Of a stretch of 64,000 nucleotides of DNA, positions 6,714-54,345 are shown piece after piece. Positions within the stretch are counted from its first letter, which is position 1, and each line of letters starts with the position of its first letter. Below the pieces are notes generated by a model, which saw only the letters and a list, made by a program, of their open reading frames with translations, did no database searches and was not told where the DNA came from. Position numbers and translations under genes: made by a program. Origin of the DNA: Eutreptiella sp. 'Long Island Sound 2002' (lineage: Eukaryota; Protista; Euglenida); NCBI GenBank assembly GCA_964036045.1, contig OZ038378.1, positions 167,772,001-167,836,000 on the forward strand, read 5' to 3'.

Positions 6714-9700
6714 TCAGACGACCTCTGGGGCCTGCACTTTGTCGAGGAAGAAAAGCTGCCGCAGCGAAGGCTTGTCAAGGGCGTAGATGTGATAGATGCC
6801 GAGGGTCGGGTGCTGTTTGTACTCGTCCAAAAAGTCATCGTAGACAGCCTCCGTCAACGTCTGCGAGTTTGGGGCACGCAGACGATGCTCAGCCGGAGTG
6901 CTGTGTGCTGTGGCTCGGGGATGGAGGACACAATGGCCCATTTGTCACAGTTGCGCCTCCACTGCAATGCTTCGTTCTCATCAGGACCTACCGACGATGC
7001 TCGAAGACCATATGCGCCGTGTAGCCCACACACACTCAATACCGCAGGCCATGCCGCAGTGGCCTATGACCCGCGCCCTGTGCCCCGATGCCCCTACGCC
7101 CTTGCCGCGGTGTGCTCTGCATTATACATGCCTTATGCCCCCTGCCAACACAGCGGGCGTCGCTACACACCCAACCCAACCGCTTGAATGTACTCCGAAT
7201 ACGCCATCGGCCGACCCGTTGCAACACGGCACTGCGCAGCAGCCCACGGGTAGGACCCGCGGAGAGAGGCACCTGCAACTTCTCGTCATCCGCTACCATT
7301 TCGAAGTGTCGCTGCATAAACGTAAGGAAGCGGCCCCTACTGATATCAAAGTCCGTCACGCAGACCTGATTTGGGGCCGGGACCTGCGAGTTCACCCACT
7401 CCAACAGCAGCGCCTCGTTCTCACATACAAACCACAGCTCCTGCGTCCTGAGTCAAAGCGATGCCCCGGGCACAGAAGAAGCAGAGATGGGCACACGTTG
7501 GAGCGGGGGACGGGGGTGGGCGGTTGACCACCGGCCCAGAGGGCTGTCTTTAAGGGCCCATCAAAAGGAAAAAAGCGCCGTTCATCAAAAGGACCGAAAT
7601 GTCGTCGCACGGGGGCGTGCCAGGCAGACAACGAATGACACAGTCGCCAAGAACGACGGCAAGAGACAACGGCAAGAGGCAAAAGAGAAGAGCAGAAAAG
7701 GCGGGAAGGTCTGAGACCCCAGGGTCTGTGTCCGCGGAGAAGGGGAGGGGGACTACTCCTCAACAACTTGTCATTCTAAATTATCATTGAGCAGGGGCAT
7801 GAGCGACTGCAGGGCGCGTGGCGATACGCGGTAAGAGCCGGCTGCACACGCTACAGGGCGGCAGAGCCTTGCCACTGAGAGAAGGGTGTTGGGCGACACC
7901 AGGCGTTTCCACATCAGAAGAATCTGCGGCAGGGGAACCAGCAGAGAAGAACAAGCACGAGATCTGATGTACGATGTTGGCAAGCGTTTTTCTTCCGGTG
8001 CAGCACCTGCGGGGGGGGGGGGGGTCCGAACCTTCCCACAGCCATTTTCAATGCCCCTCGCCTTCCGAACAACTCCGCCATTCCGTCGTGCAACAGCCCC
8101 TATCGTTCCCCGCACTCAGCGATCCGGAGGCCCCTCGCCCTGTACAACAGATGTGGCGGTCAGCAGCGGCCGAATGCTTCGTGGTCATGGATGTGAGGCG
8201 AGCCGGTGCTGGCAGGGGAGTAGTGGATGCCACAGGGGGAGCGGTGCTGCGATGATGCGGAGGGTGATCCACATTCCAGGATGACCCACGCAATTGCCCC
8301 CCCCCCCCCCTCCTAAAGCACGGCGCACACGGTCGGCAGAGCCACGGGGGGAGGGGGGTGGCAACGGGGGCCCCGACACAGGCAGCTTCACTCGTCTATC
8401 GCGAAGACGGCAGTGGCTCCACCGCTGTGGCCTCACGGATCCGAAGAGGCAACCGATGACGACGCAGTCCGGCAGTGACCAGCGAGGAGTCACGGCCCAA
8501 GGGTCCAGCCCATGCCCATGCCCATGCCCCCCCCCCCCCCTCTCGAAAGAGATCCACCATCTCCATCAACAAGAGCAGGTCACACACAAGACGCGGCGTT
8601 GGACACAAGGGGCACTTCCATGGAGCCCCCCTCTACGGCCACTGTCCCGCAGGGTGTCTGCCGCGATGGACTACGGCCACGTACGAACGGGCCACTGCAG
8701 CCGTGCAAGAGCCAAGGTCCCTGCGGTGTGTTTGGTGTTTGCGCCCCTCCTATTACCCCCTGCGCTCGTCGGCCGGGCAGTCCTCAGCAGTTCGGTACTC
8801 GGGCTGCGGGTCGCCCGGGCACCGGGAGGGGTTGGCAATGGGGGGGGGGTGGGGGGCAGTGGCTGGTCCCCTTTTATCAGGCAAACCTCTTCAAAAGGCC
8901 CCCCAAATTCCATTTCCGCCCCCGTAGTTACTAAGACACAGCGTTGTGAGACCCAAGAGACCGCCCCATTCCGACCCCAATGGATCGGAACAGATCACAG
9001 AAGCACATACTGCACACGCGACGCCAGCCGATTGACGCAGCAATGCACGTTCTTCGGTGGATCGAAGTGCACCAGCCAATCCACTTCGTCCATGTGCATG
9101 TTCAGGGGGACCCCTTTGTCCCACAGCAGCACAACCCCTGGCAAGAGAATGAGGTCTTGTGCACTTGTGCTGGGCCGTTGGGCATTCAAAGCCCCGGAAT
9201 ACACACGCGGGCACATTCACAGTGATTGATCAAAGTGGTGCGGGGTGGTCCACAGCCCTTGGCCTCGTATTCCTCCGCATCGGTGGTGGAGGCCATTGTC
9301 CGATGCTTCACAGCGGTACCCTTCGACCTCAACACCGCATGCCCGGTCACGAACTGCGGTTGGTGACCAGCGATTGACCGTCAATTTTCGTCGGCTCGTG
9401 CATCTTGCACAGACGAAGTCTTCTGACACTGTTCCACTCCCTGACGCCCCCCACATGCTCCCAGCAAACACATCACCCACCAACACCAACCACACTACCA
9501 AACACCATACCGTCCAGCACCATACTACGCCACCAGCCAGCTACCCCAACCTCACCAATCCAATCATCCTTACCAATCGACACACCCATACACGCAAAAT
9601 CGGTTCTAAAAATGCGATGACGTGGACCTGACACAGCGACTCGCGTTTCAGTACAAATGGATGCTAAGCCCCGGATGGCAACGTGCTAGTGCAAGCCTGG

Positions 9701-12700
9701 CTGATGTTACAAACCTGCCCCTAACGACCCACAGACAGCACTGAAATGGGCCGGTTCCGGGGTGTCGTCACCCGTAGGCTGCAGGTAACTCGCGCCGCTG
9801 ACACAGACGGAGCGGCCGCGCTTCGTAAACAAATGTTCCAAGAAGAGCACCTGCAACAGTAGGCGGAATTCAGAACATGGCTCGTATCCCATCACACTGA
9901 CAGCACCAATATCGCTACCGACAACACCAGCACGACAACCACAACAATCACAGGAGCAGCAGCAGCAGATATTGTCGTTGTTTGATGTCTGGTGTTGTAA
10001 TTGCTGCTGCCGTTGCTGTTGTTCGTGCTGCTGAAAAACAACAGCAGCAGCAACAACAACAACAGCAGCAGCAGCAGCAGCAGCAGCAGTAGGATCCAAA
10101 CTTTGCGTGAAGGATATTCAGTGGGAGCGACAAAACTCGTCACCTGCTGTTGTTGTTGCGCCGGCTGCTCGCTGCTGCTCGTATTTTTGCTTGTGCTGTT
10201 GCTGTTGTCAGACAAACCAGTAGCAGCAGCAGCAGCAGCAGCAGCAGCACCACCACCACCAAAGCCTGCAGCCATTTCCTGTCCATGCCCCTACACATGC
10301 CGTGCTCACCTGCATTTGCGAGTGCATCATGATAATCACTCGCTGAGTCCTCCACTTGGCCTTCATGAAGCGGTCCAAAAGGAAATACTTCTCGGCGGGG
10401 GCACACAGAACTGCATTGCGTACTGGTGCGGCCTGACCACAGAGACGAAGCCGCCGTATTGAGTACATTGGATATTGGGTGTTGGAAAGGTCTATTGGTT
10501 ACACTACCAGGGTTGGGCGGCGAAAATCAGATTTGGTCAAACTGGTCTATGGACCTTGGAACCCACCTCCCCATTTTGGGCGTGCCGAATCCAGTTCCAG
10601 GTCCAAACTAGGCAGTGGTGGGGCTCTAACAAGAGGTTCACCAGGAACGTTGGGTTTCGCAAATGATGGAGCTGCAGCGCTCGCGTATCGTTATTTCAAC
10701 CAACAGTCAAACAAAATGGATTTAACCGCAGAGGCTATCCTGTGCTGCGCTACGTCATGGTGTGACGTGCTGTGTTGTGCTGTAGCGACGCCTCTCGTCT
10801 CAATATGGTCAGCCTCTCCCAGCGAATAGCATTTTTGTGTCACAGGGTCATTGGATGCGGTCATTTTGACCTACTGGACCAGCAACCACCACCCCTGAAC
10901 TTCCCTAGTGCACACTGCATGCCACTATCCATGTGTTCATGTCTCCTACCCACCTTGCCGCTTGGATGCCCGGGATGCAGGGCTGCTAGAAAGCAGCCAA
11001 TTCCTCCCACTACGCGTGCCCCCAGCTGTTGTGGTTGAATCTCCGACACAATGTATCAGCGTGGCGTGATATTCCTGCGGCTCTAAGACTGCCAAGACAC
11101 ACCTGAATGGGACTCACTGGCTGATCAATGTTGGGGGGTGACTGATCGACGTTGGGGGCTGGCCAGGGGTGTGGCAACTGCCCATACTGTTGGGTGAGCT
11201 GTGCAAGTTGATGCTGCAGCAGTGAAATCTGTTCTTCATGATGTCGAACGAGAGTATCGATGTTACCAGTACTTGAGCTACTGCAATAACAAAGGATAGG
11301 GTGCCTTGTCATGATCGGACGCCGTCACCACAGTGTCTGCGCTCCTGGTGTGTGCGCAGGGCGCCCGTGACCGAGTCCGAGTCAGGGACGACCTAATATA
11401 CCCCCTCCTGCTGTCGTATTGTGTTGCCTTGTTGTGTTGCATGGTGTTGTGTTGTGTTGTGTTGTGTTGTGCTGTGTTGTATTGTGTTGTGTTGTGTTGT
11501 GTTGTGTTGTGTTGTGTTGTGTTGTGTTGTGTTGTGTTGTGTTGTGTTGTGTTGTGTTGTGTTGTGTTGTGTTGTGTTGTGTTGTGTTGTGTTGTGTTGT
11601 GTTGTGTTGTGTTGTGTTGTGTTGTCTCGTGATGATTTGCACTGTGGTGTGGTGTATGGTGGTGTGTTGTTTTGTGTTGTGCTGTGCTGTGCTGTGCCCT
11701 GTATTGTGGTGTGTTGTGGTGTGGTGTAGTGTGGTGTGGTGTGTTGTGTTGCATTGTGTTGTGGTGTGTTGTGTTGTATTGTGTGGTGTTGTGGTGTGGT
11801 GTGTTGTGGTATGGTATGGTGTGGTGTGTCGTGTCGTGTCGGGGCGTGGCGTGGCGTGGCGTGGCGTGGCGTGGCGTGGTGTGGCGTGTGGTGCTGTGGT
11901 ATGTTGTGTGCCAGACCGGAGTTAGCGGCTGAAAACTCAGATAAATGAAGCTTGAGCTGCTGTGGGGTCCAAAGCAGGAGTCAACGCCAAAAATGCAGAA
12001 CTGCCACAGCTACAGCCGCAGCAACAGGAGCCTGGAATTCCCTCCGACAAGTGGGGACTCCTTGGGACACGACATATGGTGGGCATCAGCACATGATGCC
12101 TTTGCGGTTGCCCATGGAACTGAACTGGTTTTCCGTGTTGCGACTCACGTATGCTCGCGGTCTGCTGGTTCCCCAACAAAACCCTCAGGAAGCTAATGCA
12201 TCGATGCCACAGACGCGTGCATATTTGCAGAGAAGGAAGAAATGCGGGTGACCTGGCTGAACTGCGTGCCGTACCTGGAGAGGGTCGGCAGCGTGATCTG
12301 AGAACTCTGAGGCTTCAATGCGGAACCCTGACGATGAGAAACCTCCTATGGAGCACACGAGTATATTGGCAGACACATGGCTGCGAAAAAATCGGTGGGG
12401 TCCATGTGTCAATGCCCGTGCCATGAACTGGTCACCAAAGGCAACATTTAACATTGGTCAAATCTTTGCAGGACACATCGTGTCCCACTTGTTCAGTCTC
12501 AAAAGCGGGGGACGAGTATGTCCACCTTTCCAAGCACTCCCAGCGATTCACAGATGTAACCGTTGCACTGGATACTTCCTTGCGTGCTGAATCCAGGGGA
12601 AAATATCGGTCGGGTGGTCCGTGCAAACCCACGGCTACGGAGCACCTGCCCGGTGAACCATCCCAAGACATAAATTGGATGCTCACGTGTCCCGATCACG

Positions 12701-13577
12701 GCGCCTGCAGCCCAATGTCTGAATGTACCTCTGTCTTCTAATAGCCCTAAGGGCGAGGTCACGAGCTGCACGCGCACGTGTGTGGGAGTAAGTGTGCGCG
12801 GTGCGTGTGTGCGCGCACGCGCCTGTGTGGCCTTGTGCCATGGAACCGCACAAGCCAAAATGTGGAACGGACTGAGCAGTCGAGTGCGCAGAGTAACACT
12901 TGGATTCATGAGAAAAGCGCACCCCCAATCAGTGACATGGGATTCCACACAGCTTTGTATAGCTACGGTCCGCCATTCTGGTGCGGTCAGGGGTGTGGCC
13001 AAGGGGAGGGCGTCAGCGATGCCAAGCTGACTGTGCTTTCGGTCAAGCATGAGGGCCACAATCCCGCCATCCAGCAGCTTCAGCGGGATGTACCTGCGCT
13101 GCAGGCATCCAAAGGCCTCATGGATCAGTGTAAAGCAGACTTGAGCATTCCACAAGGGAAAATACACATTCTACTGACAAAGGCCGATATTGGTGGTTGA
13201 TATGGATTGACGGAGGCTGTTTGAGGTTGCAGGGATTTACCAACGGCGGTGGGGGCTTTACTGAGGGTTCACAGCGCTCAAAAACGGGATTTTCAAGTCA
13301 CATGATCGCGGGAATTTGCCATTCCACAAACTTGCTTCGTCGAGTTCTCTGTAATAACAGCGCGTTGAGCCCTGAAACTTTGCAGGATGCTCCTTTTTCA
13401 TGAGAGCTTCGCATCTGCTTCAGTCGCTTGTGAAGCAAATACCTGTAGCCCTGTTGTGTGCTGTCTGCCCATTTTTGCCCATTTTTTGCTCCGTGTTTCT
13501 CCCAAAATTGACTTGCTCTGCGCCCGTGCGCTTCGGGCGGCTGACAATTTCCGCCAATTCGCCGCTGAGGCCTCTGC
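6714..13577 (-). CDS. DEAD-box (Has1/DDX18-class) pseudohelicase module of the above gene
   Basis: The last five exons (10432-6714) splice in frame and align residue-for-residue in spacing with the Has1/DDX18 RecA2 domain and C-terminal extension. The RecA1 exons (13577-12275) align more weakly. Confidence 0.7.
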
Positions 13578-16500
13578 CTGATGGGGGGAGTTGGATGCAC
13601 GTCGGTGATTGTGGTTTCTGACCAGTGCGTTGATGGAGGTTGGGGAGTGCGAGTACCATTGTGTAAAGCGTTGGAGGCATACCTCGCCCAACACCACTGA
13701 AGCAGGCACCGGTACAAACGCGCCTGCGGGCAGTGCAGCAGATGTAGCAACGGAGGACAACCGCGCGTCCTGCATTAGCGTAGGGGTATGCGGGGTGGCG
13801 CTGCCGTCCGAGTCTTGACTTTGCCAGTCCGCCGCTTTTGCGGAGGTGTGGCCGCTGGAGCCTTTTGCATCTGAGGACACGAACAAGTGCTGGGATTCGC
13901 GTGCAAACCTTGCGGCCCTTCAGCCGCGCGCGCCCCAAGGGCACTCTCGTAACCCCCCGCCCCGTCCAAAGGAGCTCTTGGCCTGGCCGCAACCCGGACG
14001 CCGAGGGTCGTGCGCACTCTATGCCCCCCTCCGCATCACTCCTGCGGCGGATCCCGGAAAACCAGCCCACACACTCCACGAATGCGGTGTACGTGTGTAC
14101 CGGTGTACGCGTGCGCACGCCTCGGTACCTGACCGCTTTACAGCGCCTGTGCGCTTCGGGTTCGTGTTGGGCCTGCGGTCTTTGCTGATAATGTTGAGGC
14201 CGCTGAACGCCTCCAGGGCCCGTTGGACCTCCGGTGCAGTCACCGCCACGCCGTCAATGGACTGGATCGTGGGGATTGCGTGGATGATGAAGTACCTGCA
14301 GTGCAGAGCTCAGGCGCAGGGCACACTCCGCTCATCAGTGTGGCATAGGGCTGGGGTGAGCTGTGGGCCCGACCGGAAGCCATCCGTAAAATGCGATGAC
14401 TGTGAAAATGCTTGTTTCAGGGGACACACTTGGCACGGTGTTGTGGTCATTAGACAAACACTTGAAGCATCGGAAGTGTGGCACTGGAAGCAGGAAACGA
14501 TGGGCTTTAGACGATTGTGAGCACCAGGCCTGGTTGAGAAGAGGAGGGGATCTTGTTTCGCCGGGATCCAAGTGCCTGAAGGCCTTTTGTGACCCAACAT
14601 TTTGCTTTTTCGAATTAGCCGCCTCTCGTCCCCCCCCCCCCCCCTGTGTGACATGAACTCCATCTGTGGTTTCTTTACGGGGCCCTGGACAGTGAACCGT
14701 TTGTTCTTCACTGCATGATGCAGTGTCAATCTTCTCCTGAAGGTCCGCCAAGCCACTGTCTTCACCCCACCATTTCAGGTAGGGTATTGTGGGGTATATT
14801 CAACAAACCCTTGAAAAGGGCTATTGGGAACACCCGGGGTCTGCATGCTGTACTGACGACATGCTTGAGATTTTCGTCTGTTTTGGATGGTGCCTGTGTT
14901 GCTTGCTGCCTCCTTTTGTCAACCTGCAGCTATCATGTCCGCATACAAATTCACATCACGGGCGGTTGCTTCCCCCGATGCATAAAAGCCTTTGGTGCGT
15001 AAAAGGGCTCGCTCTGGGGGTGCAGAGTGGGTGCAGGTGACTTGGCACCGGCCTGGCAGCCAGGCAAAAGAGCCCCATACAGCTGGTTTGCAGCAACCTG
15101 CATGCACCCACAGACCCAGAGGCCGCTTCTTTTGCAAGCCAATTTTAGGGTTGTAAAGTGCACCCCACGAAGGCTTCACAGCATGAGTCCTTGGCTACAT
15201 GCATTGATGTTGATTTGGAGACAAACGTCAAGCATGCACATCGGCACAAGTACACGAGAAAGGGGGCATCAGACAAGTGGTCCCCTGAGCGTTTCTCCAT
15301 CCTGTGCGTCGTCCAATTTCCAGCTCTGTGCTCAAAATGTGACCACCGACCCCTCCCCCCCCCTTAACCCATACAGTTCTGAAACGGCCTTTTCTCACAG
15401 ATTTCAAAAAGTATACACATACCCCATCAAGGGAACGAAATTTTGGCGCATTGGACCAAAAGTTCAGAAATCCCAGGAAAAGTGCCAAAACCCACCGGGT
15501 TGGCATCCACCGAATGTCCCAGAGAGTTATGGCATTAACCTCCGCTCAGCCCCACGACCGTGGTGTGGCACCCATGCTGCAGGCCCCCCGTGGCGGTCGG
15601 CGACCACCCCTGCCGGTTCGCTCAAGCGAAGTCTGGCACTCACCACCTATCTGCTAAGCCCTATCAGCAGGACCCCTGCACGTCGACTCAAATCACCGGC
15701 TCCCGGCCATGGGCAGGAACCATCCCCAACACAGCTCGGGATTTTGCGCGAGTGCCTGTGCTCGACCGGGCCTAGCATCCCCGCGCCTTGGTTTCTTTCT
15801 TCTTCTTTCTTCTTTCTTTTTTTTTTCCTTCTTTCCTTTTCTTTCTTTTCTTTCTTTTCTTTTTCTTGGTTGCAGCATTGCAGCACAGCGCAAAGCAGAG
15901 CGGGGCAGCTAACCTAGAGACTGCCAGGCCCGGGAGCTCCTTCCCATTGATCGTATTGGGGGAGCGCAGTACCGCTTTTTGCATGGACCGTCCTCCATAG
16001 CCGTTGGCACCACATCCAGCGCCGGAGCCATGTCTAGTCCCGTTGCTACCTTGGTGGTAGTACATCAGCTGCTACTGATACAACAGCACTTTTTGTCCCT
16101 CCGTGCGCCGCGCTTTGGGTCTCCCCTCCCACGACTACCTCCCATGCAATTACTTAATCACTTAATTGCTCAATTAAACAAGGCCTGTTGAGCAACCACA
16201 GATTTATCAGTGCCAAAGCCCCCAGACGGTCGACCGTCATATTCTCGGACTTTTCCGGTTGCATGTGCTCTTGTTCTTTGCGTTTCAGTGATACATGCAC
16301 CAACACTCAGCTGAAATTCATTGCAACAGCAGGAACCACCTAGGCCTCTTTCCTATCTTTATGTGCCTCAACACTTCGGGCCCCTGGGTGTACCAGGCAA
16401 AAAAAAAAAGAGTGCTCATAACATCAAAACTGGACCTGTGTGCAAAAAGAGACCGGCATGACCGGTGAATCTGACGCATTAAGGAAGGCATAAGCCACAT

Positions 16501-19500
16501 ATATTTGCAGGGTGACCTGAAAGTAAAGTATCAGTGGGGCACAAAAACTACGCCATAATTCTTCACTTGGTAGAGTGAGTGGATTAGTTTGGACCAGATT
16601 TTGGAGGCCTGTACGGTGGCCTCCTCAATCACATTGGACTCCGGGGAGGCTACACGTGAAAGGGGATCTGCCGGTTGTAGGTGACTAGGCACCCACACGA
16701 CATGGAGAGTTAACTGTGACGTGCGGAGACGGTGTACAACATTCCGAAGAACCTGCTGTTGTTTCCAGTGGCGGGACCTAGCTCGTAGGTTCACTGAACC
16801 CCAAACAGCTTGCATATTATCCTGGAGCATAGCAATCTGGGAGAGCTTGCGATTCGCTGCATATTTCACAAGTATGGATACACCGTACAACTAAGCCATT
16901 TATTGCGTGGAGACCTAGGAAGGGCACTCGTAGACGTGACCTCGACCCGCAGAGAACAACCCGACCCTATAACGCGTGGCACCCTGGGATGTGGTGTATT
17001 CCGCTGCATCCACCGCCACCCACTTAGCTAACATCCAAGACGCTGCAATCACCGACAGAGGCTTGAAGTCGGGCATGGCCACGAGCGCCGCCGAGACCAT
17101 GGACCTCCAAAAGGTGTCCGTGACACGTATATAATCAGACCTATTGTAGGAGATGGCCATCCAGACCCCTGCTAGGAACGGCAAGTGTCCCTTCTTGGGG
17201 GCAGCCAACCAGCCTATGAGACCAAGTATATGTACAATGGTCTTAGCGCACACAACACGTCCATGGACATTAATCAGTGCTGAAAATACGCGGGTGCGTA
17301 GGTGCTAGGCATAGCCGCCCAACAAAGGAACTTCCGTCGTAGTGTATGCAAGTTCGGCAAAGCCATTCCGGGCTTGGGTCCCCTGTGAGCTTGATTGCCT
17401 AGTGTACAATTAACAATAAAAGAACACTTCGTGGGGGGTTTTGGGATGACAAATATGGGCGCACTGGGCGCACGACGGAACCCGCGCATGTCGTCATGAA
17501 TGACAAACACGTGGCCCTGCCGGATTAGGGCCTTGGTCATAGCCAACTCCTCTGGACGTAATTCCCTGCGAAGTACCTCCAGACTGCACATGGCCAAAAG
17601 AGCACGTGGGGTGGCTACGTTGTCCCCTGTGTCCTGGGAAATGTGGACCCGTCTTGCCGGCCCCAGGCCCATCTCAGCCACCTCGGGCGGAACCTGCAGG
17701 TGACCCCGCTGGGTTGTACAACCTGGACCCACCGAAGATCCCTTTTTAGGGCTAGTGGGAGACAAGCCAATACATGTGGCAAGAAGTTCCGCAAACTACA
17801 AGTGCTAGACAGTGGTAAACAGGAATTGAACATATTGAGACGTGCCTAACCGACGAACAAACTCCACCGCCACCATAAAAACAGCAAACAACGGGACCCA
17901 CAGCTGGGCAAACGTCTAGCGTGGTGGGAGCCTGACACGCCGAGCCAGCCGCCAGAGCTTGGACCGCCACTGGTGGATGTGATGTCTGGAGTGCGCATGT
18001 AACGGACGGAGAGAATGGGAATCATCTAACCCCCGCCCCCGAATGGTGCGCTGTCTTGCAGGCCTTGGCTGCAAGCGAGGCTAGCTGCGCGACGTCTTTG
18101 GAGGCCTCTCCTGTGTCTGGACATTTGACTTTGGGCAAAGGTCTCCGTGGCCTGGGTCTCTGGGCGTCAACTGCGAAGTTTTGGACCACGGGTTCCTTGG
18201 TAGTTGGTACAAAGGCAACTGGGTTTGGCCTTGGCTAGTCTCTACCCGTGGCTTTTAGTTTAGCTCCACACGACGGCTCCTGTTTGTGCACGTCTCTTGA
18301 TCCCTTGGCCCGGAACGTCCACGTCGAATTGAACAGCAGGGGCACCAGGCGCTTCGTCCAAGCCCTCAGCTCCTGATTCGTCCGTGACCCATTCCAGCTT
18401 GGAGTCCCTAATAAACTGTCGTGACGGCCAGAGCCTGCTCGCCTTAAACTCCTTCCACTCGTAGTGCCAGTCACCCACGGATCCTAGTATAACGACTAGC
18501 CACGGTACTTGGCCTTTCGTCCATGGTACCCCGACCCACCTGGCAACGCACTTGCGGGCGACCCGGAGAGACTTCCAACGCCCCCTCTGGACCACCATGG
18601 CCAAGCTGCTCGAAGGGACCGAGTATCATGGGATTACGTGGCACGCATGGAGACGAGCAGTGGCCACTATATTCCTCCGCGCAGGCGGCACTATGCCGGA
18701 ACTACTAACTGCCGGTAGGTAGGGGGAACATCCTTGGATGCTGATCTGAAGCGGCACGAATCCAGATACTATGTTTATATAATCCCCAGAGGGCCTCGTG
18801 ACCCACTGCCTTCTGGATTTTTGGTCAAAGAATCGGACCACAGACTTGCTTTGCAGGAGATCGACCGCTCGGATGCTGGCGGCTTCATTGACCCTGAGGC
18901 AATAGGCAATGGATAGGAGAGACAACGCGACGACGATGCGTTCATGTGGTGATTGGGCTTTGCGACCCATCGTTTCGAGGACCTCCAGTGATCCCCAGCG
19001 TTGTGACCTGCCCGTACGAGCGAGTTGTTCTTTACCACGGACAAGGCGCCACACATTCTGCGGTACAAATTGGGGGCAGAGGTCAAGTTCCTCAAGGAGT
19101 CGGCACGCCCCAATTGCCTGTCGCATGCCAGATGCCGTGTCATGTCTTTGGGCCTGGCTGAATGGGTGCTTCCCGAGGATGATCGTAGGGTCACTGGTGT
19201 CGGACGTGAACTGTGTGGTAGCCATAGCCTTGGTGTGGCGGGAGTATGCATCCAGAGTGGACTTGGCCTAGGAGGCCAAGGCGACGGTGCACCAGTTTGA
19301 CGGGCTCTCCCTCTGTCGGAGTTCTTCGAGTCGTTGGGCCCATTGAGAAAATCCGTCTTCCAGCTCTTCAGTGTGGCAGAACTCGTGCCCATGGCTTTGC
19401 CGACGTCCCGAGGAGCTACTTCATCGTCGATGACGTCGTGCGCACTTCCATTCCAAGTGGCAGCCCCCGCAGTGGTCGCAGTCACTAGGCGGGGGCTGGT

Positions 19501-22500
19501 TTGTGCGCCACCGCTTACCGCTTGCTGAGACGACATACTCAATCCCGTCAACTTCACAGAACCGGAATTTTCCGCGGTAATAGTACTTGATGTCAGTGTC
19601 ATCTCCCGAGTCTCTGGTAGATCCGCTGCGCGTGGACACCAAATTGGATCTCGATGCCGACCGGGGCCTCTTGCTCTATCTATCCCTCCTAGATTTGGAC
19701 CTCTTCCGTGACCGGGACCTTGAACGGCGTTTCTTCTTGGACCCCTTAGACCCCTTCCCATAGCGAGCATACTTGCGTTCATATTGCTTTTGGGCTTTGA
19801 CCACCAGGCTCCAGACGCCTAAGACAGGCAGTGTGGGAGGTTCAGCGAGAATGTTTTCGTGAATGGCATGGGATATCATGTCCAAGATGCTGAGCATCCA
19901 TCCTGTCAGCCCTGTAGTAGAGTCTCTGAAGTCCTTGATGGTGTCCACTGTCAATGGCAGGGCCAGCCAGTCGTCCTTAGCAGTATGCGACCTCTCTTTT
20001 TCATCCTTGGCAAGACCCTTTTCCAGCTCCTCAATTTTTGATTCCAAGGCCTTGATAGATGACTTCTTATCCGGGTCATCAGCTGATGACTTGCGTGAAC
20101 CTCCAAGTGATTTCAATGGCATGAATTTGCCTGTCTCAGGCATGTACCGGGACTTGTGAACTTCCTCCCAAGCATAGAGCACATCCATCATTTTTTCCGG
20201 GGGCATCTCGATAGCAAGCTGGGCTTGTCGTGCTGCTGCAATTTGTGGGACATTGTGACCAGCCTGGACCCACCTTACTGACATCTCAGCAACTCCGTTG
20301 GCCAGTTTGTCTGCTGGAGCCCGTGATATCCAAAGTGGAAATGCATGTTCTACGAAGGCTCGCACAGCTGCTAGCTCGGGCTCCTCTTCAGCTAGCCGTT
20401 TCTTATTGTTGTCTGAGGGCATCACTTGGGATTAGTAGATGATGTTCACTGAAGTCGGTCTGTGCAGCGAAGTATGTGCTGGCACTTGTTCCCAACACAG
20501 GAGGTATCAGTGGAGAGAAAAGAAGAAGAGAATAAAACACACACAGGCCACTGGGCTATCTAGCCCTGAGTAAAACAATAAATAAATCTGTGTAACAAAC
20601 ATTCAAGCTAGGCACCCATACAGAAACCACCGTTCACGGAGCAAACGATAGTTTTGTTGTGTTCTGCTTTGTCATCGGCGAGGCCCAGTAGCTCGGTTGG
20701 GCCAGTGCCAGCCGTTCTTCTCCTGGGGTGTACCAGCTACTGCACTGAACGCAGCCCAACACATCTGGAAGAGCAAACACGGGTCGTGAGTTTCCTGGGC
20801 TCGCACTATTTTGTTGCGGTCGCGCGTCTCAAGCACCCGTCTCACTCTGCTGCAAATTTGCCAGCCCCACCCAGCCCCAACCCACCACAAAATTGCACCT
20901 TCTGGTGTTCCCTCTCACTCCCCACTCTGAAGGATGGCATGCAGGACCCCCCCCCCCCCCCCGAGAGCGGCCAGAGAAAAAAAACAATGTGTCGCGACAG
21001 TGAACCGGGTCCTTCAGCTTTTGGCGAACAACTTCATTTAGAAACGTCACTCTTACGGAAAACCCGTCCACACGCTTCGTCTGCCAGCCCAACATGTCGT
21101 ATCCCACTTGAAAACGTGTTTGTGGCTGTAGATGCTGTTGCAATAATGCGTTGCAATGGAGTGTGGAAAACAGCTTTCTGTATGCTCTTGTGGGCCACTC
21201 CAATACATCAGCCGCAATGGTGAGCAGTGGGATCAACACTCCACACAACTGCACCTTTCCTGTCCCCTCTCGAGAAACACACATGACGTCAATCACCAAA
21301 GCAGTTCACACCACACGATACGACACTGGACACCTGGTGCTGCATGGCACCCAACCAACCTTCATGGGGCCCCAGGTCAAATGAGGCCCAAAGATGTCTG
21401 CCACATTTGGGGCACCCGCCAGAAACTGGGGTTAGGCCAGGGTTTGGGGGCCCGCCTGGAATCAGTCCGCCGCCCTGCCATCCTATCTCAAATGGACTAT
21501 AACAGAAGGGAAACGCAGGACAATCTGGACTGAAGGCGGGTGTAATTCTGCACACGACGGTAGGCGGGCCCCAAACCCTGGCCTAACCCCAGTTTCTGGC
21601 GGGCGCCCCAAACGTGGCAGACATCTTTGGGCCTCACTTGACCCACATCGAAGGGGAGAAACGCGCAGCCGAATCACCGAAAGGACGTTTGCCGGCGGTC
21701 ACACTGCGGTACGGCGTCAGGGGGGGGGGATAAAGGCTGAAGGAGTATGCCGGTGATGGGTGGGTGCGTTGCCCACCCGTTAGGTTGGGGGTGAAGAGGG
21801 GCGGGTTCAAACAACTGTGAGAGGTGGGCAGCCCATTGGGCTACCTAACAGCCGGGGAAAAATGTTTTTACGGCATGAGATTGGGAGAGCTGCCCCGCTA
21901 CTCACAAGTGCTGCTTGTGCCCCTTTGCGTCAAGGCCCGGAGGGGGGGGGTCCTCTCGTTTTCCATGTCAGTGGCCATGTCCTCCACAACACAATGCCAC
22001 ACCAAAACCATCGCAGGGTGCTTCAGCCAATACCTTTGAGGTCCTACACTGCCCCCATGCACCCCCATACCCTCCGAACCAAAAGACACACAGACCTGTA
22101 GTGCTGGTAATCCACCTGATCACCGTTGTTCAGATAATTGGGGCAGGCTGCATTGTCCAGCAATGAGATGTGCCGCAACTGAGGGAATGCCCGTGCAACG
22201 CGTTCGACAAACCTAGAGGCAGGTGGTCGATCTCAAGGCATGTATTGGGCGCCAGGGAAACGCAAGAGAGCTGAAGGTTGGCCTTGTGACAATGAGTGAT
22301 CGGTGACTTAAGGGAAGCGGCCTCCGCAATACTGACAGTGGGGGGGGGGGTTTCGCCCGGGGACAATTTTGCCGCGGATAATTTCGCCAGGGGAATTTCG
22401 CTACCCTTGAAATCCCCAAAGCTCCAAGTGTCATACGCCCGAACGACTGCAATAAAAGACACAAGACATGCACCAGACAAAGACTCCCAAATCCCAACAC

Positions 22501-25500
22501 ATTGCCACAACATTGTCACAGAATTGTGTTTTCTGAGAGGGGCCAAGTGCGCCTCCGAACGCGCCTGAGCCAACCGTTTCTTGCACAGATGCATGAGATT
22601 TGGTGCTGTTGATCCTGCAACTGGTGCCAGATTGGCCTCTTTTTCGAAGCATTCAGAATCACTAAGGCATGGCCATCCAAGACACACACTAAGTGCAGCC
22701 ATATTAATAAAGCACGCCTCTTTCAGGGGCCAAGCGCCTACGAGCCTGCCTGAGCCAACTGTTTCTTGCACAGATGCATCAAATCTGGTGATTTGCATGC
22801 ACCAGTTATAGGATCAGCAGCGCCAAATTTCATGCATCACCTCCCCCCTTTTTTCCTTTCGAACACACGCGGACTTGCCCAAGCGGGGTTACAGAATGAC
22901 TGAATAAACCGATCTGCGCAAGAAACGGTTGGCTCAGGCGCGTTCGTAGGCGCGCTTGACTCTTCTCAAAAGACAAAATCCCTGCAGCCCTGGCGAAGTA
23001 TGGACCTGTTCCGCTAAAGTTTCGCGGGCGAAAATTTCGCGACCTTTAATAATGGCGAAATCCCCCCCCCCCTCCCCTGGTAAGCCTCACCATCAACTTG
23101 AACATGCACAGTTCTCGACTTTCCAGAGACCTTGTTCTAACCCGACCCAAGCTTGATCATTTATGTGGTGCCATTCCGTGTCGGAAAATCACAGGGGTCC
23201 GGCGGCGGGTTTCCTTTCAAAAAACAAAAAGCAAGACCTACAAATTGTGCGGAGGAAGATTTGGGGGGGGGGGTTTGTCGGAGGTGGTGAAAGGGGCTCC
23301 ACACACAAACTCCGAGATACTATTTGCCCAAGAGACCCTACTTTCGTGCCCCAAAGAAAAGGAATTCAGAGCCAACAACGGCCAAGGTGTGGTTACCAAG
23401 GGTTGAAAAAGGCAAGCTCAACCTGGATAGATTGTCGATTTGATTGCTGTTGACGTAGAAGAGTTGCAGTTGCGCCTGTTGACGAGGGTGGCAGATGCCA
23501 AGATGGCACATCACCACTCAATGTGGGGACGAAGAGTTGGCAACCATCACATCAAGAGAGTAAGTGTGATAGCTTTGTTTTCCATTGAGAACAACGAACA
23601 GCTTTAAATCATTTCTATCCTCAAACAACATCTTTTGCTAACGCAAGGCAAGATCCAAATGTAGCCCCTCCCTCCTTGCTAGAAAAGCAAGGGGTCTTGG
23701 ATCGCAATAGCAAAGCAATTCCCGACTCCTCTCGCCAATATGGTAAAGTGCAATCCATGGACGCATGGCACTTAAGCGCAATGCCTTCTTGCGAAGCCCT
23801 TCCACGCGAGCCTAGCAATCCACACATTGCCCCTCCATCCTCGGCTTCGCAAGAGGGCCGTCCATGGATTGTCCTTAAAGACGACTGACGAGAGCACAAA
23901 ACAAAAGATGTTCTCAACTGGTCATGGCCTGTAGGTGCATTAACGCGAACGCAAGCGAGGAGATTCAGTTCATGGGGCATGTTTGCTAGAAACTCAATTT
24001 GCCTACAATCTTGCATTGTCACTCAGGCTGTAGTTTTTGTTGCTTTGCCACGAACTTTGCTCTTCTTACATATGCAACACACACTACCACCATCAAAATT
24101 ATTTGTGTTAGCACACCGGCACTTGTGCACGGCAGCAGTGACTTTCTCGATGCTATAGCCCTGATATGGACGGAAAGAGGCTTGCACCCACGCAAGTAGC
24201 CCCCCAATGAACTGCACAGCACTCTCAAAGCGCCGCGGGGTGTGCACCGACGGAACCGAAAACGAACCACACTCCTACTGTCTTGTACTTCGCTGTCAAG
24301 GTTCCCATCAACGGAGGCACACAATTGCAGGGCAAAGGACAACAAAGTAGAGATGCCTTAGCCTGGCCGGGGCGTTCTGGGACACAAGAATGCAGCATTG
24401 CGCACAAGTTGTCAACAAGAGACGGCGGCAAGCACGCAAAGAGAAAGTGATCACACGGCCATTAACTGCATACAGTACACACAGGAGGTGTTTAAATTCT
24501 TCTGAGCATACCAGATCAGTTCGTTTTCGCTTTATCTTACCGTCTCTACACGTAGCAATTACAGGCAGCAACCAAAATCAAGTGCAGGCAAATGCAGTAC
24601 AACAAACTAAAGAAAAGGAGCCTAAAAACAAGAATTTTCACCGCCAGAATCAAAGAGACTCATCTCAAATCCACTTTAGAACAGGCAATTCCACAATCTG
24701 CGGCCCTTTCTCTGCGCGACTGGTCGCGCGCGCCCCACAGTGCCGGTGGCACAAGAGAGGCCACAGGCAATCAATCAAAAAACGAAAAAACGAAAAAAAC
24801 GAAAAAAAGACCGTGGGGGGAGGGCGCGGTGGAGCAGCCTTGTACAACATGGTACAACATGGTGTTCAGCACTTGCATGCCTATTCTACCCAGTAGAATC
24901 ACCACACGCTGTGGTTGACACAGTTCAACAAACAATGGGGCAGGGGGGGGGGGGGCAGGTGCAAAGTCAAACCAAAATGCAATGAAACAGAGAACGTGAC
25001 AGACTATGGGTGGGACGTGCTGAGTGCTGCCGGAGCCTGAGCGGAGGCGGTGGGAAGCGAGGCCCACGCACCCCCCACCCCTTGGGACAGGCTGCTGCAA
25101 GCTTTGGCTGGGCGTGGGGTGTGTGTACGCACAGACATTGGCTTAGCGAAAGCGCGCGGTGAAGCATCCTGGTGGCGGTCTTTGTGTCACACCTTCCAAC
25201 CCCAGAACCAGTACTACACAGTTTTTATGATGGCTGCAGGTGTGCCTCACTTACCAAGACCACCCATTCTCCTTGGACTAGAGTTGGGCTTGTGAGGGTT
25301 CAGGGAAAGGTTGAAAGGCGAGTACCATATAAGGAAGTGCAATAGTGCTTTTGATGCGATTACCGTGTGCTATAAATGACCGGAGATTGGGGAAGTTCGC
25401 AAGGAAGTCCACATTGTCGAAGTAGTTGTATGAGACATCCAAATAAAGTAGGTTGAGCGGTTCCAGAACATACGAGGACGGAAGCTCATGCAAATTGCGG

Positions 25501-25556
25501 AACCCCAACCGTAGTCGTTGATTGTTGTTTTGTACGTCACAAGAAGAACTGGACAT
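6714..25556 (-). CDS. LRR (LRMDA/C10orf11-like) domain fused to a catalytically degenerate Has1/DDX18-like DEAD-box helicase; at least 14 exons, about 670-730 aa
   Basis: Phase-compatible GT-AG exons: 25556-25326, 23475-23423, 22212-22096, 14295-14129, 13870-13683, 13577-13443, 13098-12852, 12586-12526, 12380-12275, [one unresolved exon probably within 11220-11010], 10432-10310, 9850-9715, 9137-9011, 7447-7273, 6860-6714 (TGA). The N-terminus has LRR repeats and an LRR cap (NAACPNY...YQHYRYFIIHAIPTIQSID). The C-terminal part is colinear with Has1/DDX18: KMGRQHTTGLQ, IPLKLLDGGIV, NILVCSIGGF, VLCAPAEKYFLL, VDWLVHFDPPK, and a C-terminal extension (EAVYDDFLDEYKQH...IYHIYALD). The donor at 12852 is inferred from alignment length. 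Confidence 0.75.
9945..10262. repeat. (CAG)/(CAA)/(TGC/TGT)n trinucleotide microsatellite cluster, intronic
   Basis: Visible runs of cagcagcag, caacaacaa and tgttgttgc between exons 10310 and 9850. Confidence 0.9.
11420..11895. repeat. (GTGTT)n pentanucleotide microsatellite grading into GTGGT/GTGGC variants, intronic
   Basis: About 40 near-perfect GTGTT units followed by degenerate pentamers. Confidence 0.95.
14129..25556 (-). CDS. LRR module (exons 1-4) of the above gene; LRMDA/C10orf11-like leucine-rich repeat protein domain
   Basis: The spliced translation reads MSSSSCDVQNNNQRLRLGFRNLHELP...LLYLDVSYNYFDNVDFLANFPNLRSFIAHGNRI...AQLQLFYVNSNQIDNLSRFVERVARAFPQLRHISLLDNAACPNY...YRYFIIHAIPTIQSIDGVAVT. 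All four junctions are GT-AG and in frame. Confidence 0.85.
16531..17990 (-). pseudogene. Reverse transcriptase (central core deleted) plus RNase H of the YR retrotransposon
   Basis: The RT N-terminal motifs APIFVIPK...KCSFIVNC...LPNL are present. RNase H motifs are VAVDAA, a degraded xxLYGV (catalytic Glu position), QDN and WVPSHLQPADPLSR. No LPFGW or YxDD motif lies between them. Confidence 0.8.
18260..19400 (-). pseudogene. Tyrosine recombinase of the retrotransposon; disrupted by a stop, an internal inversion and an apparent catalytic Tyr->Cys change
   Basis: N-terminal AKSTLDAY, box I YCLRVNEAA (catalytic Arg), HAWRR on the opposite strand at ~18640-18655, and GRWKSLRVARKC with C at the catalytic-Tyr position. 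Confidence 0.8.
19421..20425 (-). pseudogene. gag-like ORF of the YR retrotransposon with Ser/Arg-rich linker and C-terminal CCHC-like knuckle; one in-frame TAG at ~19676
   Basis: ORF 20425-19676 continues in the same frame into 19642-19421, which ends in CDHCGGCHLEWKC (C-x2-C-x3-H-x4-C). Confidence 0.7.
21375..21643. mobile_element. Small fold-back (MITE-like) element with ~83-bp inverted arms
   Basis: 21375-~21458 is the near-perfect reverse complement of ~21561-21643, with a ~100-bp spacer. Confidence 0.75.
22290..23075. repeat. Intronic repeat with internal direct and inverted subrepeats (MITE-like)
   Basis: The motif gcctgagccaacYgtttcttgcacagatgcat occurs at ~22563 and ~22748, with an inverted copy at ~22915-22945. 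The AATTTCGC-rich ends at ~22345-22405 and ~23020-23070 are opposed. Confidence 0.55.
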
Positions 25557-37545: not shown

Positions 37546-40500
37546 TCAGGCACGGGGCTTTCCGCTCCCAAACTTGTTCGTGAACTCCTCAAACTTTTGA
37601 ATTTGGTCTGCGGTGACCGAACCCATGCCCTGCACATGCCCCAGGAAATCCTCTTTGGTGACCGGCGGGGGGACCAACCGCCGCAAGTCCGAGGGCGACA
37701 TGTCTGCAAAGTCCATGGGGCTGGCCCCGGGATGGCTTGGGGCACAGGGCTCCAGCAGCGCGCCCTGCCGGTTGGCTGGGTCCTGGGAACGCACTTCACG
37801 GAAATGCGTGGCCGCCTCAATGCTGGCCACGCCCTGCATGAGGGCAGCGCGGCAGAGATTGCGAATGTCTGCACCTGCGGACAAGGCATGGGGTAGGGTG
37901 AGGGTAACACAGAGAAGTATTGAAAGGGGGGGAGGGGGCTTCTGGGACCCAAAAGTTTGTGTACCAAAAATGGCCCGACCAGATTTTCCCTGATGTAAAT
38001 TTCGTTTTCTCTCACGATGGTCACTTTGGTCGGGGGGGGGGGTCCATGGGGGGGGGGGGTAACCTCCCCTCCTTCTATGGTGTACGGCCATTATGATACT
38101 TCCCTGGGGTAACCTCCTGCCCCAGAAGCCCCTTGCACTGTACCCTCCCCCATTTTGTCTACATTGAGAGGGTCTTTTTGCACAACTCCCATGAACTCTT
38201 CTCCACTGTTAGTACTCAAATCCCTTGAACTCTTCTCCAGATACTGTGAGTGAACCTAAGCAGTCTGTTGGCAATTTTCCCTGATATCACTGAAGAAGGC
38301 ATCGATCCTGAAAGCGCACGCGGAGGTCGGCAGGGTCCAAAGCGCCAAGACATAAATTGGGCACCCCTTCTTCCAATGCCAAAACAATGGTCCCGACCCT
38401 TAAAAGGGTACATCAGCCGTGCGAAAACGCCGCACAGAGCACCGCAAGGGCCCATCCTAAAACCAAAAGCTGGCAGTGGATTTGTAGATGATGAGGGCAG
38501 CGAGTGGAAACAGGAGTCGCATGGGAAGTGGGGAAACGGGAAGCCCGTGGAATTGCTGCACACCGGGGCAGGTGCACTGGTGCAAATGGATGATTCCCCA
38601 CAGCGTTTTTTGTGGCATTTCAATTATTTCTGGAGTTCAGTGGTGGAGGGGCCCACTCCTCCATACGTACGGACTTGTCTCTCCCATCGTTGGCATAGCC
38701 ACGTCGCAGGAAGGGGACAACCCGTTTACGTGCATCAACTTCGGTACCTCCAGTGGTCTCCATGGCACTAAATGCCGCTCCGTCGTCTGATTGTGTGACA
38801 ATGTCGATTGCGGCGGGGCTTTGAGTCAGGGCAACGCGGCGGGTGCTCTTGCAACATGAAAATACTGGCGGGCAACGTGCCTTCCATTCAAAATGCAAAA
38901 ATGAAGCATACGCCCCGTCGGACCCCCTCGTGACCAAACCCTTTTGAAAAGATCTCACTTCCCGCACACGCCCTTCTCCCTCGCCCCATGAATAGCGTAG
39001 GTCATGGGGCACAGAAAGGCAGAGGCCCCTGATCACACAGGGCCTTGCACCCAAAAAGGCAGGGCCCTCGAGCAGCACCTGAATATAACTCGGTCCTGGG
39101 CACGAGCTCCTGCCAATCGGCCTCTGTCAAAGTGTGCGGATGGTCTCCCATGTGGATGTCAAACATGCTCCGCCTGCAGCGACACGAATGTGAGTGCAGC
39201 CCAAGGCCACGCGCGAAGTACCACACGAAGGGGCATTCAGTAGCGACCCCAGCAGCTGCAGCAGATCAGAGGGCACAGGGCAAGAGTATGTCGTTTCGCC
39301 GGGGCGCTGGGTGGGCGTTTGCGGTTCGCTGGTGTCAGAGCGACTCTGTAGAGCCACATCTGCTGGGGTTGCAGATGCCTGAGATCCGGTATGCCTACGG
39401 CTGCGGCATATCTGGGAGCGTCGCAAACAACTACAGCTTTCTCAAAGCCCTTGAAACACGCGGACTGTTGTTGCACTGCGTGCACACTGCATCACACTGC
39501 GTCCATATTTGGCAATAGTGACCAGATACCAGATACCAAGCCCTCACCCCCTCTGTACAGCAAGAAAGTGCGGCAACGCAAAACATCCGTACAATTCTGA
39601 TAGTCGTGTACCTGCTGTGATTTCTGCCACAGCCTTGGCATCGTGGGGCATCAGTGACAGAGCTTGGTGCAGCCTGACGCAACGGTCCCCCTTTGAAGAC
39701 ATGGTTGCTGCTGTTTTGCATCAAAAGACACGTGCTGCTCAGTACTGAGTGGGGAGCGGTAACATGCGGGCATGTATGTGGCGGTGGATTGCGCAACATG
39801 AATGTCAACACGTGCGCTGCCCAGAAAGATACGACTCCATCGTGTTTGCATCGCGCACATGAAATCTGCAGCGCTATGGCTGCACCGAAGCAATGTCCTT
39901 GCGCTCGCACGCCGCGTTCTGCCGACGAAGAAGAATTTCTAGCCTTCTGGGACCAACCACACGGCATACCCTCTTGTAGACCAACCATACATGCTACCCT
40001 CCCGGGTTCCCCCTTTCACAGACAACCCACCCGCCCGTATGGACAAGCTGTTTTACAGCTTCCTTTTGGGTGGCCTACAGCCGTCAGTTTATGGCGGTTG
40101 ACAGCTCCCGGTTTACGTTGCGTGTGCTTCACGTTGTGCAAGGCAGTGTGTCCTCCCAACCCCCCCCCTGCCCGAACCCTAGTACTCTTTTTCCAGCACC
40201 TCTACCAGTTCCTTGGGCCAATAACCTCCACCCCCGCCGCACCCTCATACCGGGCTGTAGCGTCAGGCAAAGGGATGTAGATCCGCCTTTCGAAGCGCCG
40301 GCGGATGGCGGGATCCAGAGCCCACGGCAAGTTGGTGGCACCAAGCACGAGCACGCGCTCCCCTTTGTCTTGGCCTACGCCGTCCATCTGGGCCAAGAAT
40401 TCCGTGAGCACGCGGTGTGTGGCATCCGAGCCCCTGAAAGCCAAAAAGCGGGTCCTCAGGAGCCAAAAAAACAAAAACAAAAACTGCCCCGGCGATTAAA

Positions 40501-41970: not shown

Positions 41971-42055
<85 letters not shown>

Positions 42056-54086: not shown

Positions 54087-54345
54087 TATTCGGAATTGGG
54101 AGAAATCTTAAAAACAAGGCAACTTCTATATTTTATTTTTTTCTATATTCCAAACCAGAATCTTGCTAGATTCTTGGTGCCTTGCTCCTTGATGCCAAGA
54201 GCAATATGCTTTCAACACCAAAAAAAAATCGAGCTGGCATTTTAGAGATTACGAACTGCTTTAGATGCATTAAATGGAGTGGCTCATTTGCTCATTTTGC
54301 CAGAACCAGACTCCCGGATGTCGCGGGCTACGCAAATCGGTGCCA

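Follow-up and report, generated by a model that had tools for sequence, protein, structure and literature searches.

A locus of Eutreptiella sp. that may join an LRMDA-type LRR domain to exons derived from the C-terminal half of Has1/DDX18

Introduction

Has1 (yeast) and DDX18 (human) are DEAD-box helicases that act in ribosome assembly and have a CTE_SPB4 extension. Catalytically dead helicase modules can be used as scaffolds; an example is the inactive C-terminal cassette of Brr2. LRMDA binds GTP-bound RAB32/38 via its LRR. LRMDA/C10orf11 (OCA7) is the adaptor from RAB32 to Commander/Retriever, and its Retriever-binding motif, [IL]x[DE]xx[IL]-COOH, lies at the very C-terminus (PMC12491506).

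The locus described here lies in a window of 64,000 nucleotides, the whole stretch of DNA that was analysed, from Eutreptiella sp. 'Long Island Sound 2002' (contig OZ038378.1, positions 167,772,001 to 167,836,000). The locus spans 25556 to 6714 on the minus strand and holds LRR exons followed by helicase-like exons. Coordinates are those of the window, and all exons given below are on the minus strand. The window is fairly gene-rich, so close neighbour genes are possible.

Results

Exon X1 (25326..25556) carries the start codon (ATG), encodes repeats 1-3 of an LRMDA-type LRR domain and ends at the donor gtactc. Pfam LRR_8 and LRR_4 matches were found in X1, both below the cut-off. LRMDA-like proteins P0032, P0047, P0085 and P0093 aligned to X1 with tblastn E values of 1.8e-10 to 9e-8, and the alignments stopped exactly at the exon edge at 25326. 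The LRMDA/C10orf11-type LRR that the first-pass annotation had placed at the N-terminus is borne out by these matches, insect proteins among them, which end at the exon boundary, and by the NCBI names of two of the four proteins. X2 (23423..23475) encodes a single LRR (LQLFYVNSNQIDNLS), found by motif scan, between the acceptor caacag and the donor gttgag. X3 (22096..22212; sites ctctag and gtctgt) encodes the final LRR and the beginning of the LRR cap, and it aligned to residues 90-128 of P0085 (tblastn E 0.021). Both exons are phase compatible; the codon test was best in-frame for X2 and also favoured X3 as coding. The cap sequence runs across X3 and X4 (14129..14295), the latter encoding the cap (YFIIHAIPTIQSIDGVAV...) and a 30-residue tail before the donor G/gtaccg. 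For coding, X4 ranked at the 99.5th percentile within the window, and its in-frame codon test was +0.43 vs -0.64 and -0.38. Past its donor the read-through to the stop at 14022 scored -0.22 and was not coding-like. With the donor at 14129 unused a 226-aa stand-alone form is possible, the tail of which is this same non-coding-like stretch. The four GT-AG exons X1-X4 encode an LRMDA-type LRR domain with its cap.

Intron 3 (14296..22095, minus strand) is 7.8 kb long and contains long minus-strand ORFs at 16.5-20.4 kb. These ORFs are 119-347 aa in size with some coding signal, and Pfam gave no match to them. They look like a mobile element.

A continuous frame from the LRR exons into the helicase-like exons had been proposed. 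GT-AG junctions are present at 14129 to 13870, 13683 to 13577 and 13443 to 13098 (minus strand), and their phases give a single unbroken frame from the ATG at 25556 into the exon beginning at 13098. To this extent the proposal stands. At about 13.4-13.9 kb all three minus-strand frames are without stops, so an open frame is cheap there and its continuity proves little. An alternative in-phase route leads from the donor at 14129 to an AAG acceptor at about 13143.

The linker exon Y1 (13683..13870) is low-complexity and Ser/Ala-rich, with a good acceptor (tcgtgtcctcag), the donor gtatgc and a fitting phase. It had a weakly positive codon test (+0.11) and a coding score at the 94th percentile, and word search found no relatives of the linker. 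Y1 is doubtful as a real exon. Y2 (13443..13577) has splice sites and contains KMGRQHTTGLQ, previously read as a Q motif. Y2 is supported neither as a Q motif nor as coding sequence: similarity of Y2 to Has1 was at noise level and not above shuffles (p = 0.88), the in-frame codon test was -0.09 and not the best of three frames, and no match was obtained to the RecA1 profile or in Pfam. Z1 (12967..13098) is coding-like (RRYIPLKLLDGGIVALMLD…) with no recognisable family. Its codon test was +0.34 vs -0.66 and -0.57 and its segment score was 15.4 (>95th percentile). Z1 is in phase 0 at both ends and joins Z4 directly in phase. Its helicase similarity was not above chance in shuffles, the RecA1 profile, a PDB search or hhalign.

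At least six exons from about 1 kb beyond X4 have a clear coding signature. Z4, M, Z5, Z6 and Z7 form an in-phase GT-AG chain of about 225 residues. Taken singly, at 33-56 residues, the exons are too short for a fold prediction. The in-frame reading had the best codon score of the three frames in X1-X4, Z1, Z4, M, Z5, Z6 and Z7, and canonical in-phase sites join these exons. A Has1 profile of 120 sequences was searched against 2168 six-frame segments. Six control exons gave hhalign E values of 0.18-0.77, and 170 random segments confirmed the calibration.

Z4 (10310..10432) is a RecA2-like start (…VLCAPAEKYFLLDRFMKAKWRTQRVIIMMHSQMQ) with an eroded motif IV region, and its sites, tctctgtggtcag and gtgagc, are strong. 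Against Has1 it gave a tblastn E of 0.29 and a shuffle z of about 5.8; the hhalign E was 0.034 on Has1 profile columns 148-185 (empirical p 0.04). Z5 (9016..9169, start at 9169 or 9155) is the RecA2 core and retains EVDWLVHFDPP. Motif V reads WDKGVPL (for TDVAARG) and motif VI reads NRLASR (for HRVGRTAR). Z5 gave a tblastn E of 0.13 against Has1, a shuffle z of about 6 and an hhalign E of 6e-6 (probability 85%, columns 244-256), a score that none of the 170 controls reached. On the Has1 profile it was the top segment (E 0.024) and Z4 was second, in the order and on the strand expected from Has1. In the PDB (phmmer) DDX18/Has1 chains were found for Z5 at ranks 2-4 with E about 1, at the homologous position, and were the only helicases matched. 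Z5 is single copy in the genome, so there is no processed copy that could reveal splicing.

Between these two lies the candidate middle exon M (9254..9353; FVTGHAVLRSKGTAVKHRT…), at the position of Has1 'HAELL…HGKQKQQKRT'. It has the acceptor ccgcag in phase 0, connects Z4 and Z5 (start 9155) in phase and had a codon test of +0.49 vs -1.23 and -0.18. Its likeness to Has1 is by eye and was not significant in shuffles or hhalign. Z6 (7273..7440; ELWFVCENEALLLEWVNSQVP…EKLQ) is at the position of Has1 'ALLFL.PEE..FL…'; it follows Z5 in phase 0 through the acceptor gacgcag and has the donor CAG/gtgcct. Z6 had a coding score at the 99th percentile and a codon test of +0.49. Its resemblance is likewise by eye only, and PDB, profile and ESM Atlas gave no match. 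The last exon, Z7 (6714..6860; YDDFLDEYKQHPTLGIYHIYALDKPSLRQLF…APEVV), is CTE-like, with the acceptor ctcgcag in phase 0, coding sequence at 6860-6717 and a TGA stop at 6716-6714. It had the highest coding score of the region and a codon test of +0.75. The hhalign E of Z7 was 0.069 on profile columns 334-364, the CTE (empirical p 0.07), and there was no PF13959 match in the window.

Has1 outscored DDX10 and DDX55 on Z4, Z5 and Z7. These scores and the PDB matches confirm the earlier assignment of the downstream likeness to Has1/DDX18 and not to DDX10 or DDX55, and the collinear hhalign and profile matches (E 0.034, 6e-6 and 0.069) agree with the RecA2- and CTE-like exons recognised in the first pass. 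They support descent of the Z4-Z7 chain from the C-terminal half of Has1/DDX18 (RecA2 and C-terminal extension). An intact Has1 is present in the same genome on C12. Its intron positions mostly differ from those of the helicase-like exons, with one roughly matching, which argues that these exons are not a recent duplicate.

The earlier claim of a complete helicase fold was not sustained, as only RecA2 and the C-terminal extension are traceable. Exon by exon, Pfam gave no DEAD, Helicase_C or CTE_SPB4 match and no helicase-like exon reached any threshold, while the AAA exon of a neighbouring gene matched at 1e-26. PF00270 (DEAD) had no match at E<=10 on any segment, and PF00271 (Helicase_C) was not reached by the RecA2-like exons. 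The RecA1 profile was built from 15 DEAD-box genes of the same genome and a Has1 exon from contig C2091. None of the proposed RecA1-like exons was supported by this profile, by Pfam or by shuffle tests. No coding-like segment that could hold motifs Ia-III was found at 12985-10402. A RecA1 domain, a P-loop and the DEAD and Q motifs were likewise not found at the locus. Given this, and given that other residues stand in place of motifs V and VI, the RecA2/CTE module is predicted to be incapable of ATPase or helicase activity. Nothing relevant was retrieved from the PDB for Z1, Z4, Z6 or the last-exon segment. ESM Atlas searches with Z6 and Z7 gave no usable match and low recognition. A search of the whole genome for Has1 matches at E<=1 did not return the locus.

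By-eye candidates for motifs Ib/II (12457-12330) and III (11324-11230) failed the codon test and were dropped. A dynamic-programming gene model added junk exons through overfitting and was not used as evidence.

Word searches with exon X1 and the linker returned the window's own ORF or nothing. A library-wide search with X1 returned generic LRR and LRMDA-like animal proteins, none of them euglenid, and none of the best 100 LRR matches had a helicase domain. Metagenome scans with X4 and Z6 found nothing, and neither LRMDA nor DDX18 is listed in the supplements of the E. gracilis transcriptome paper. The libraries, metagenomes and own genome searched yielded no transcript, no orthologue and no processed copy. 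The combination of an LRMDA-type LRR with RecA2/CTE was absent from the best 100 LRR relatives and was not found in the literature consulted.

Discussion

The preferred explanation is that the LRR gene and the helicase-derived exons are one minus-strand locus, which would be spliced into one protein; its probability is put at about 0.5. The donor at 14129 would be spliced to the downstream exons via Y1 and Y2 or straight to an exon around 13.1 kb. The product would be a single polypeptide, about 460-570 residues long, with a helicase relic in place of the usual LRMDA tail. It could be a non-enzymatic adaptor, a role suggested with low confidence. The LRR head may bind a partner as LRMDA binds RAB32, and the dead RecA2/CTE module could be a docking surface for RNA, RNP or protein, replacing the Retriever-binding motif. 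A euglenid LRMDA may tentatively be pictured as rebuilt, its LRR head kept and its tail swapped for an ATPase-dead Has1 RecA2+CTE. This would give a single-chain adaptor that links the partner of the LRR, which might be a Rab32-type GTPase, to a surface of RNA, an RNP or a helicase cofactor.

Against the fusion, the searches made returned no transcript or orthologue, no helicase-like exon matched Pfam, the locus was missing from the genome-wide Has1 matches and only one intron position is close to one in the genome's own Has1. Further, Y1 is weak, Y2 is non-coding-like and the stop at 14022 would end a normal-sized LRMDA of 226 aa. The same weak or non-coding-like linker exons would suit two tandem genes, an LRMDA-like gene of ~226 aa that ends at the 14022 stop, or at 13401 if the linker exons are included, and an independently trans-spliced gene from near 13.1 kb encoding a truncated, ATPase-dead Has1-like RecA2/CTE. 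LRMDA relatives are stand-alone proteins of 214-269 aa, with a helicase domain in 0/100 of the best LRR matches. The strong acceptors at 13871 and 13099 are equally usable as spliced-leader sites, and neighbour genes in the window are a few kb apart. The two genes would, however, lie only 0.15-1 kb apart in a genome of 2.28 Gb, and E. gracilis is reported to be sparse. The read-through tail after X4 is not coding-like, an out-of-frame AUG comes first at both candidate 5' ends, and no Met-initiated coding-like first exon was found for the second gene. Two genes are considered somewhat unlikely.

It is improbable that the LRR gene alone is real and that the helicase-like stretch does not function as a gene, being either a decayed unexpressed fragment of a Has1 duplicate or a chance likeness. 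Such a stretch would account for the lack of a Pfam match on any exon, for a PDB E of about 1 for one exon and none for the others, for the lack of genome-wide significance and of relatives or transcripts in the searches made, and for the low ESM Atlas recognition. Decay to about 25-30% identity would, however, erase the strong in-frame codon bias in six exons. Neutral decay would not keep canonical in-phase splice sites or a stop right after the CTE-like end, and three collinear profile matches together are very unlikely by chance. Fusion of the LRR to a Has1/DDX18 core that is eroded yet has all its parts (Q-motif exon, RecA1, RecA2 and CTE) is rated more improbable still. The proposed junctions are present and phase-compatible, and by eye Z1 has 'Q…IP..L' spacing like a RecA1 start and aligns to Euglena Has1 'RCIPLLLSGKDVV', but the score of this alignment is lower than the mean of the shuffles (p = 1.0). 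The RecA1 profile and Pfam DEAD find nothing and Y2 fails the codon test. Z1 joins Z4 in phase, with no coding-like segment at 12985-10402 for motifs Ia-III.

If the locus encodes one protein, it would be one of few documented instances in which half of a DEAD-box helicase has been retained as a non-enzymatic part of an adaptor whose mechanism is known. It would bear on the reuse of helicase domains and on LRMDA-type roles outside animals. If there are two genes, a diverged helicase remnant lies beside an ordinary LRR gene and is of local interest for genome annotation. In that case the locus would also show how easily phase-compatible GT-AG chains are found in GC-rich, stop-poor DNA, which calls for caution.

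Compared with LRMDA, the N-terminal domain of about 190 residues has the same LRR run and cap, and the closest matches over a single stretch are to insect LRMDA-like proteins, up to the end of X1. Unlike in LRMDA, the Retriever-binding tail is absent, and the candidate tail may run on into the helicase-derived module. The pattern [IL].[DE]..[ILMV] followed by a stop had no match in the three minus-strand frames between 14300 and 1, and neither of the candidate C-termini, …APEVV and …MRRGA, fits the Retriever motif. Compared with Has1/DDX18, Z4, Z5 and Z7 correspond in order to the start of RecA2, the 'VDWIVQYDPP' core and the C-terminal extension; the locus differs in its replaced motifs V and VI and in lacking a Lys-rich tail, and RecA1 was not found. 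With dead modules of the Brr2 type the locus shares a RecA-type domain without ATPase motifs in a kept reading frame. Brr2-type modules keep both RecA lobes and adjoin an active cassette, whereas here the RecA2/CTE half alone can be traced, and it may be partnered by an LRR domain.

Gene model

The locus is encoded on the minus strand of the window (C1:167772001-167836000), part of a non-human assembly of 2.28 Gb and 2,317 contigs. Its gene model was searched exon by exon using Pfam, PDB, profiles and alignments. It starts with an LRMDA-type LRR gene. Downstream, probably within one transcription unit, lies a coding, ATPase-dead relic derived from the C-terminal half of a helicase of the Has1/DDX18 type. 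Word, library, metagenome and own-genome searches and the E. gracilis transcriptome supplements yielded no transcript, no orthologue and no processed copy.

LRR exons

The LRR part is encoded by four minus-strand exons, X1 (25556-25326), X2 (23475-23423), X3 (22212-22096) and X4 (14295-14129). X1 begins with a Met start and gave weak Pfam LRR_8 and LRR_4 matches. The AG/GT borders of X2, X3 and X4 were read from the DNA, as were the phases of X1-X4 (0, 2, 2 and 1), which maintain a single frame. The predicted product has about five LRRs and then a typical cap (…DNAACPNY…DYQHYR|YFIIHAIPTIQSIDGVAV…). Coding potential was scored in-frame and out-of-frame for each exon using codon usage trained on 16 long exons of the DEAD-box genes of this genome. 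X1-X4 all scored positive, each highest in its own frame.

LRMDA-like proteins aligned to X1 by tblastn with E values of 1.8e-10 to 9e-8, the alignment stopping exactly at the predicted exon end, and one of them also matched X3 (E 0.021). Two of the four X1 matches looked up are named 'leucine-rich melanocyte differentiation-associated protein-like' at NCBI. The LRMDA/C10orf11 identity proposed in the first-pass annotation is therefore right. Single-stretch library matches to X1 include proteins of 214-269 aa. An all-library search with X1 found no euglenid relative. Intron 3 contains a minus-strand cluster of long ORFs (16534-20431; 119-347 aa) with some coding signal. None of these had a Pfam match and the cluster looks like a mobile element.

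RecA2- and CTE-like exons

Even at E<=10, none of the candidate helicase exons matched the Pfam families DEAD, Helicase_C or CTE_SPB4. Exon-wise Pfam scanning works in the window, as the AAA exon of the neighbouring multi-exon gene (37573-47880, minus strand; MIT domain and AAA ATPase domain of Vps4/katanin/spastin type) was found at E 1e-26. A genome-wide CTE_SPB4 scan gave eight loci, none in the window. A Has1 RecA2 query gave 122 matches across the genome at E<=1, and the locus was not one of them. When PDB sequences were searched with the exon at 9216-8998, DDX18/Has1 chains ranked 2-4 (E about 1), aligned in the homologous place.

Targeted tests drew on Has1 exons of two sources, contig C2091 and the alga's own gene on contig C12, and on a profile of 120 Has1/DDX18 C-terminal sequences. 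Among all 2,168 six-frame segments of the window the profile ranked 9216-8998 first (E 0.024) and 10498-10211 second (E 2.4), the two being collinear on the minus strand. tblastn with Has1 was consistent with this (E 0.13 and 0.29, respectively). Shuffle tests gave z of about 6 for exons Z4 and Z5. Single exons aligned to the profile by hhalign at 6e-6 for Z5 (over EVDWLVHFDPPKN), 0.034 for Z4 (columns 148-185) and 0.069 for the last exon, Z7 (columns 334-364, the CTE), compared to 0.18-0.77 for six control exons. Of 170 random window segments 4% reached the score of Z4, 7% that of Z7 and 0% that of Z5. On each of the three exons Has1 outscored both DDX10 and DDX55. Three ordered same-strand matches are very unlikely to have all arisen by chance, and the suggested Has1/DDX18-type similarity is supported for the RecA2-like and CTE-like exons.

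Z4 (10432-10310) is bordered by tctctgtggtcag| and |gtgagc. The middle exon M (9353-9254), Z5 (9155 or 9169 to 9016), Z6 (7440-7273) and Z7 (6860-6717, stop at 6716-6714) follow on the minus strand by in-phase GT-AG joins. In all five the own frame was strongly best (+0.33 to +0.75), Z6 and Z7 scoring among the highest in the window, and together they look like a working gene. Motif V reads WDKGVPL compared to TDVAARG in Has1, and motif VI reads NRLASR compared to HRVGRTAR. A module with these predicted motifs cannot hydrolyse ATP. The end of Z4 and the Has1 'SACK|E' intron share their phase and lie no more than one codon apart; other intron positions differ from those of Euglena Has1. Z5 is single-copy in its own genome. 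The locus is not a recent Has1 duplicate. Shortly beyond the Z4 donor, two (CAG)n tracts at 10042-10089 and 10218-10249 (CTG on the gene strand) create poly-Leu, poly-Ala and poly-Cys pseudo-ORFs which inflate coding scores.

Linker exons, Q motif and RecA1

The proposed junctions 14129|13870, 13683|13577 and 13443|13098 are present, with GT…AG borders, good pyrimidine tracts and compatible phases. They prove little because all three minus-strand frames are open over 150-277 codons at 13.4-14.25 kb, a second in-phase route joins donor 14129 and an AAG acceptor near 13143 without intermediate exons, and the linker exons are not supported by the codon test. Y1 (13870-13683) was weakly positive (+0.11). 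Y2 (13577-13443) was negative and its own frame was not the highest. The intron between them, 105 nt and in-frame, was also negative, as was read-through beyond donor 14129.

The Q motif assigned to Y2 (KMGRQHTTGLQ) and the RecA1-like exons gained no support. Against Has1, shuffle p was 0.88 for Y2 and 1.0 for Z1 (13098-12967, minus strand), and a RecA1 profile of 15 DEAD-box genes of the genome plus a C2091 Has1 exon had no match in the region. Z1 is coding-like, matches no family and joins Z4 directly in phase 0, with no coding-like segment between 12985 and 10402. Only RecA2 and CTE of the helicase can therefore be traced, about 225 residues in all. The first-pass annotation is supported in part, for the LRR exons, the presence of the junctions and the RecA2/CTE matches and not for the Q motif and RecA1. 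The downstream part is a relic rather than a whole helicase fold. The 2.5-kb Z1-Z4 intron contains a long pentanucleotide array (11430-11899; about 82 copies of TGTTG followed by (TGGCG)n, period 15 nt) in which all three frames are open for >180 codons.

Neighbourhood and other helicase loci

Coding scores in the window peak at the exons of a coiled-coil protein at 56706-61386 (plus strand). A second Has1-like locus spans about 85 kb of the same chromosome as the window (C1:29896339-29981588), with 55-63% identity to Has1 in motif I and RecA2 pieces and a weak CTE match, and is distinct from the intact Has1 on C12. The 55-kb contig C2091 (Has1 locus at 46000-55559) has few short introns and a visibly higher AT content than the window. 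On it are an MTHFR-like gene and a canonical Has1 (DECD replacing DEAD), which shares 88% identity with a JGI-sourced protein and 66% with proteins of brown algae. The contig may derive from a different organism in the culture. Intronless DDX55-like (C2145:1-2292, 660 aa) and DDX10-like (C2010:6689-9838, 492 aa) frames on small contigs could be retrocopies or foreign DNA.

One gene or two

The odds that the LRR and helicase-like exons are fused in one gene are about even. The alternative is a stand-alone LRMDA-like gene beside a separate helicase-like gene. LRMDA relatives are small stand-alone proteins, none of the 100 best LRR matches carried a helicase domain, and a stop at 14022 would yield a normal protein of 226 aa; the weak linker exons and fairly gene-rich window also favor two genes. 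For a single gene, both parts lie on the same strand with an X4-Z1 gap of 1 kb, and the read-through tail beyond donor 14129 looks non-coding. After either possible independent 5' acceptor the first AUG is out of frame, and the AUG following acceptor 13870 opens an ORF of only 31 codons. Fusion is further favored by a difference from animal LRMDA. There the LRR binds RAB32 and a terminal [IL]x[DE]xx[IL]-COOH motif binds Retriever (PMC12491506), whereas the euglenid locus encodes this ending nowhere downstream.
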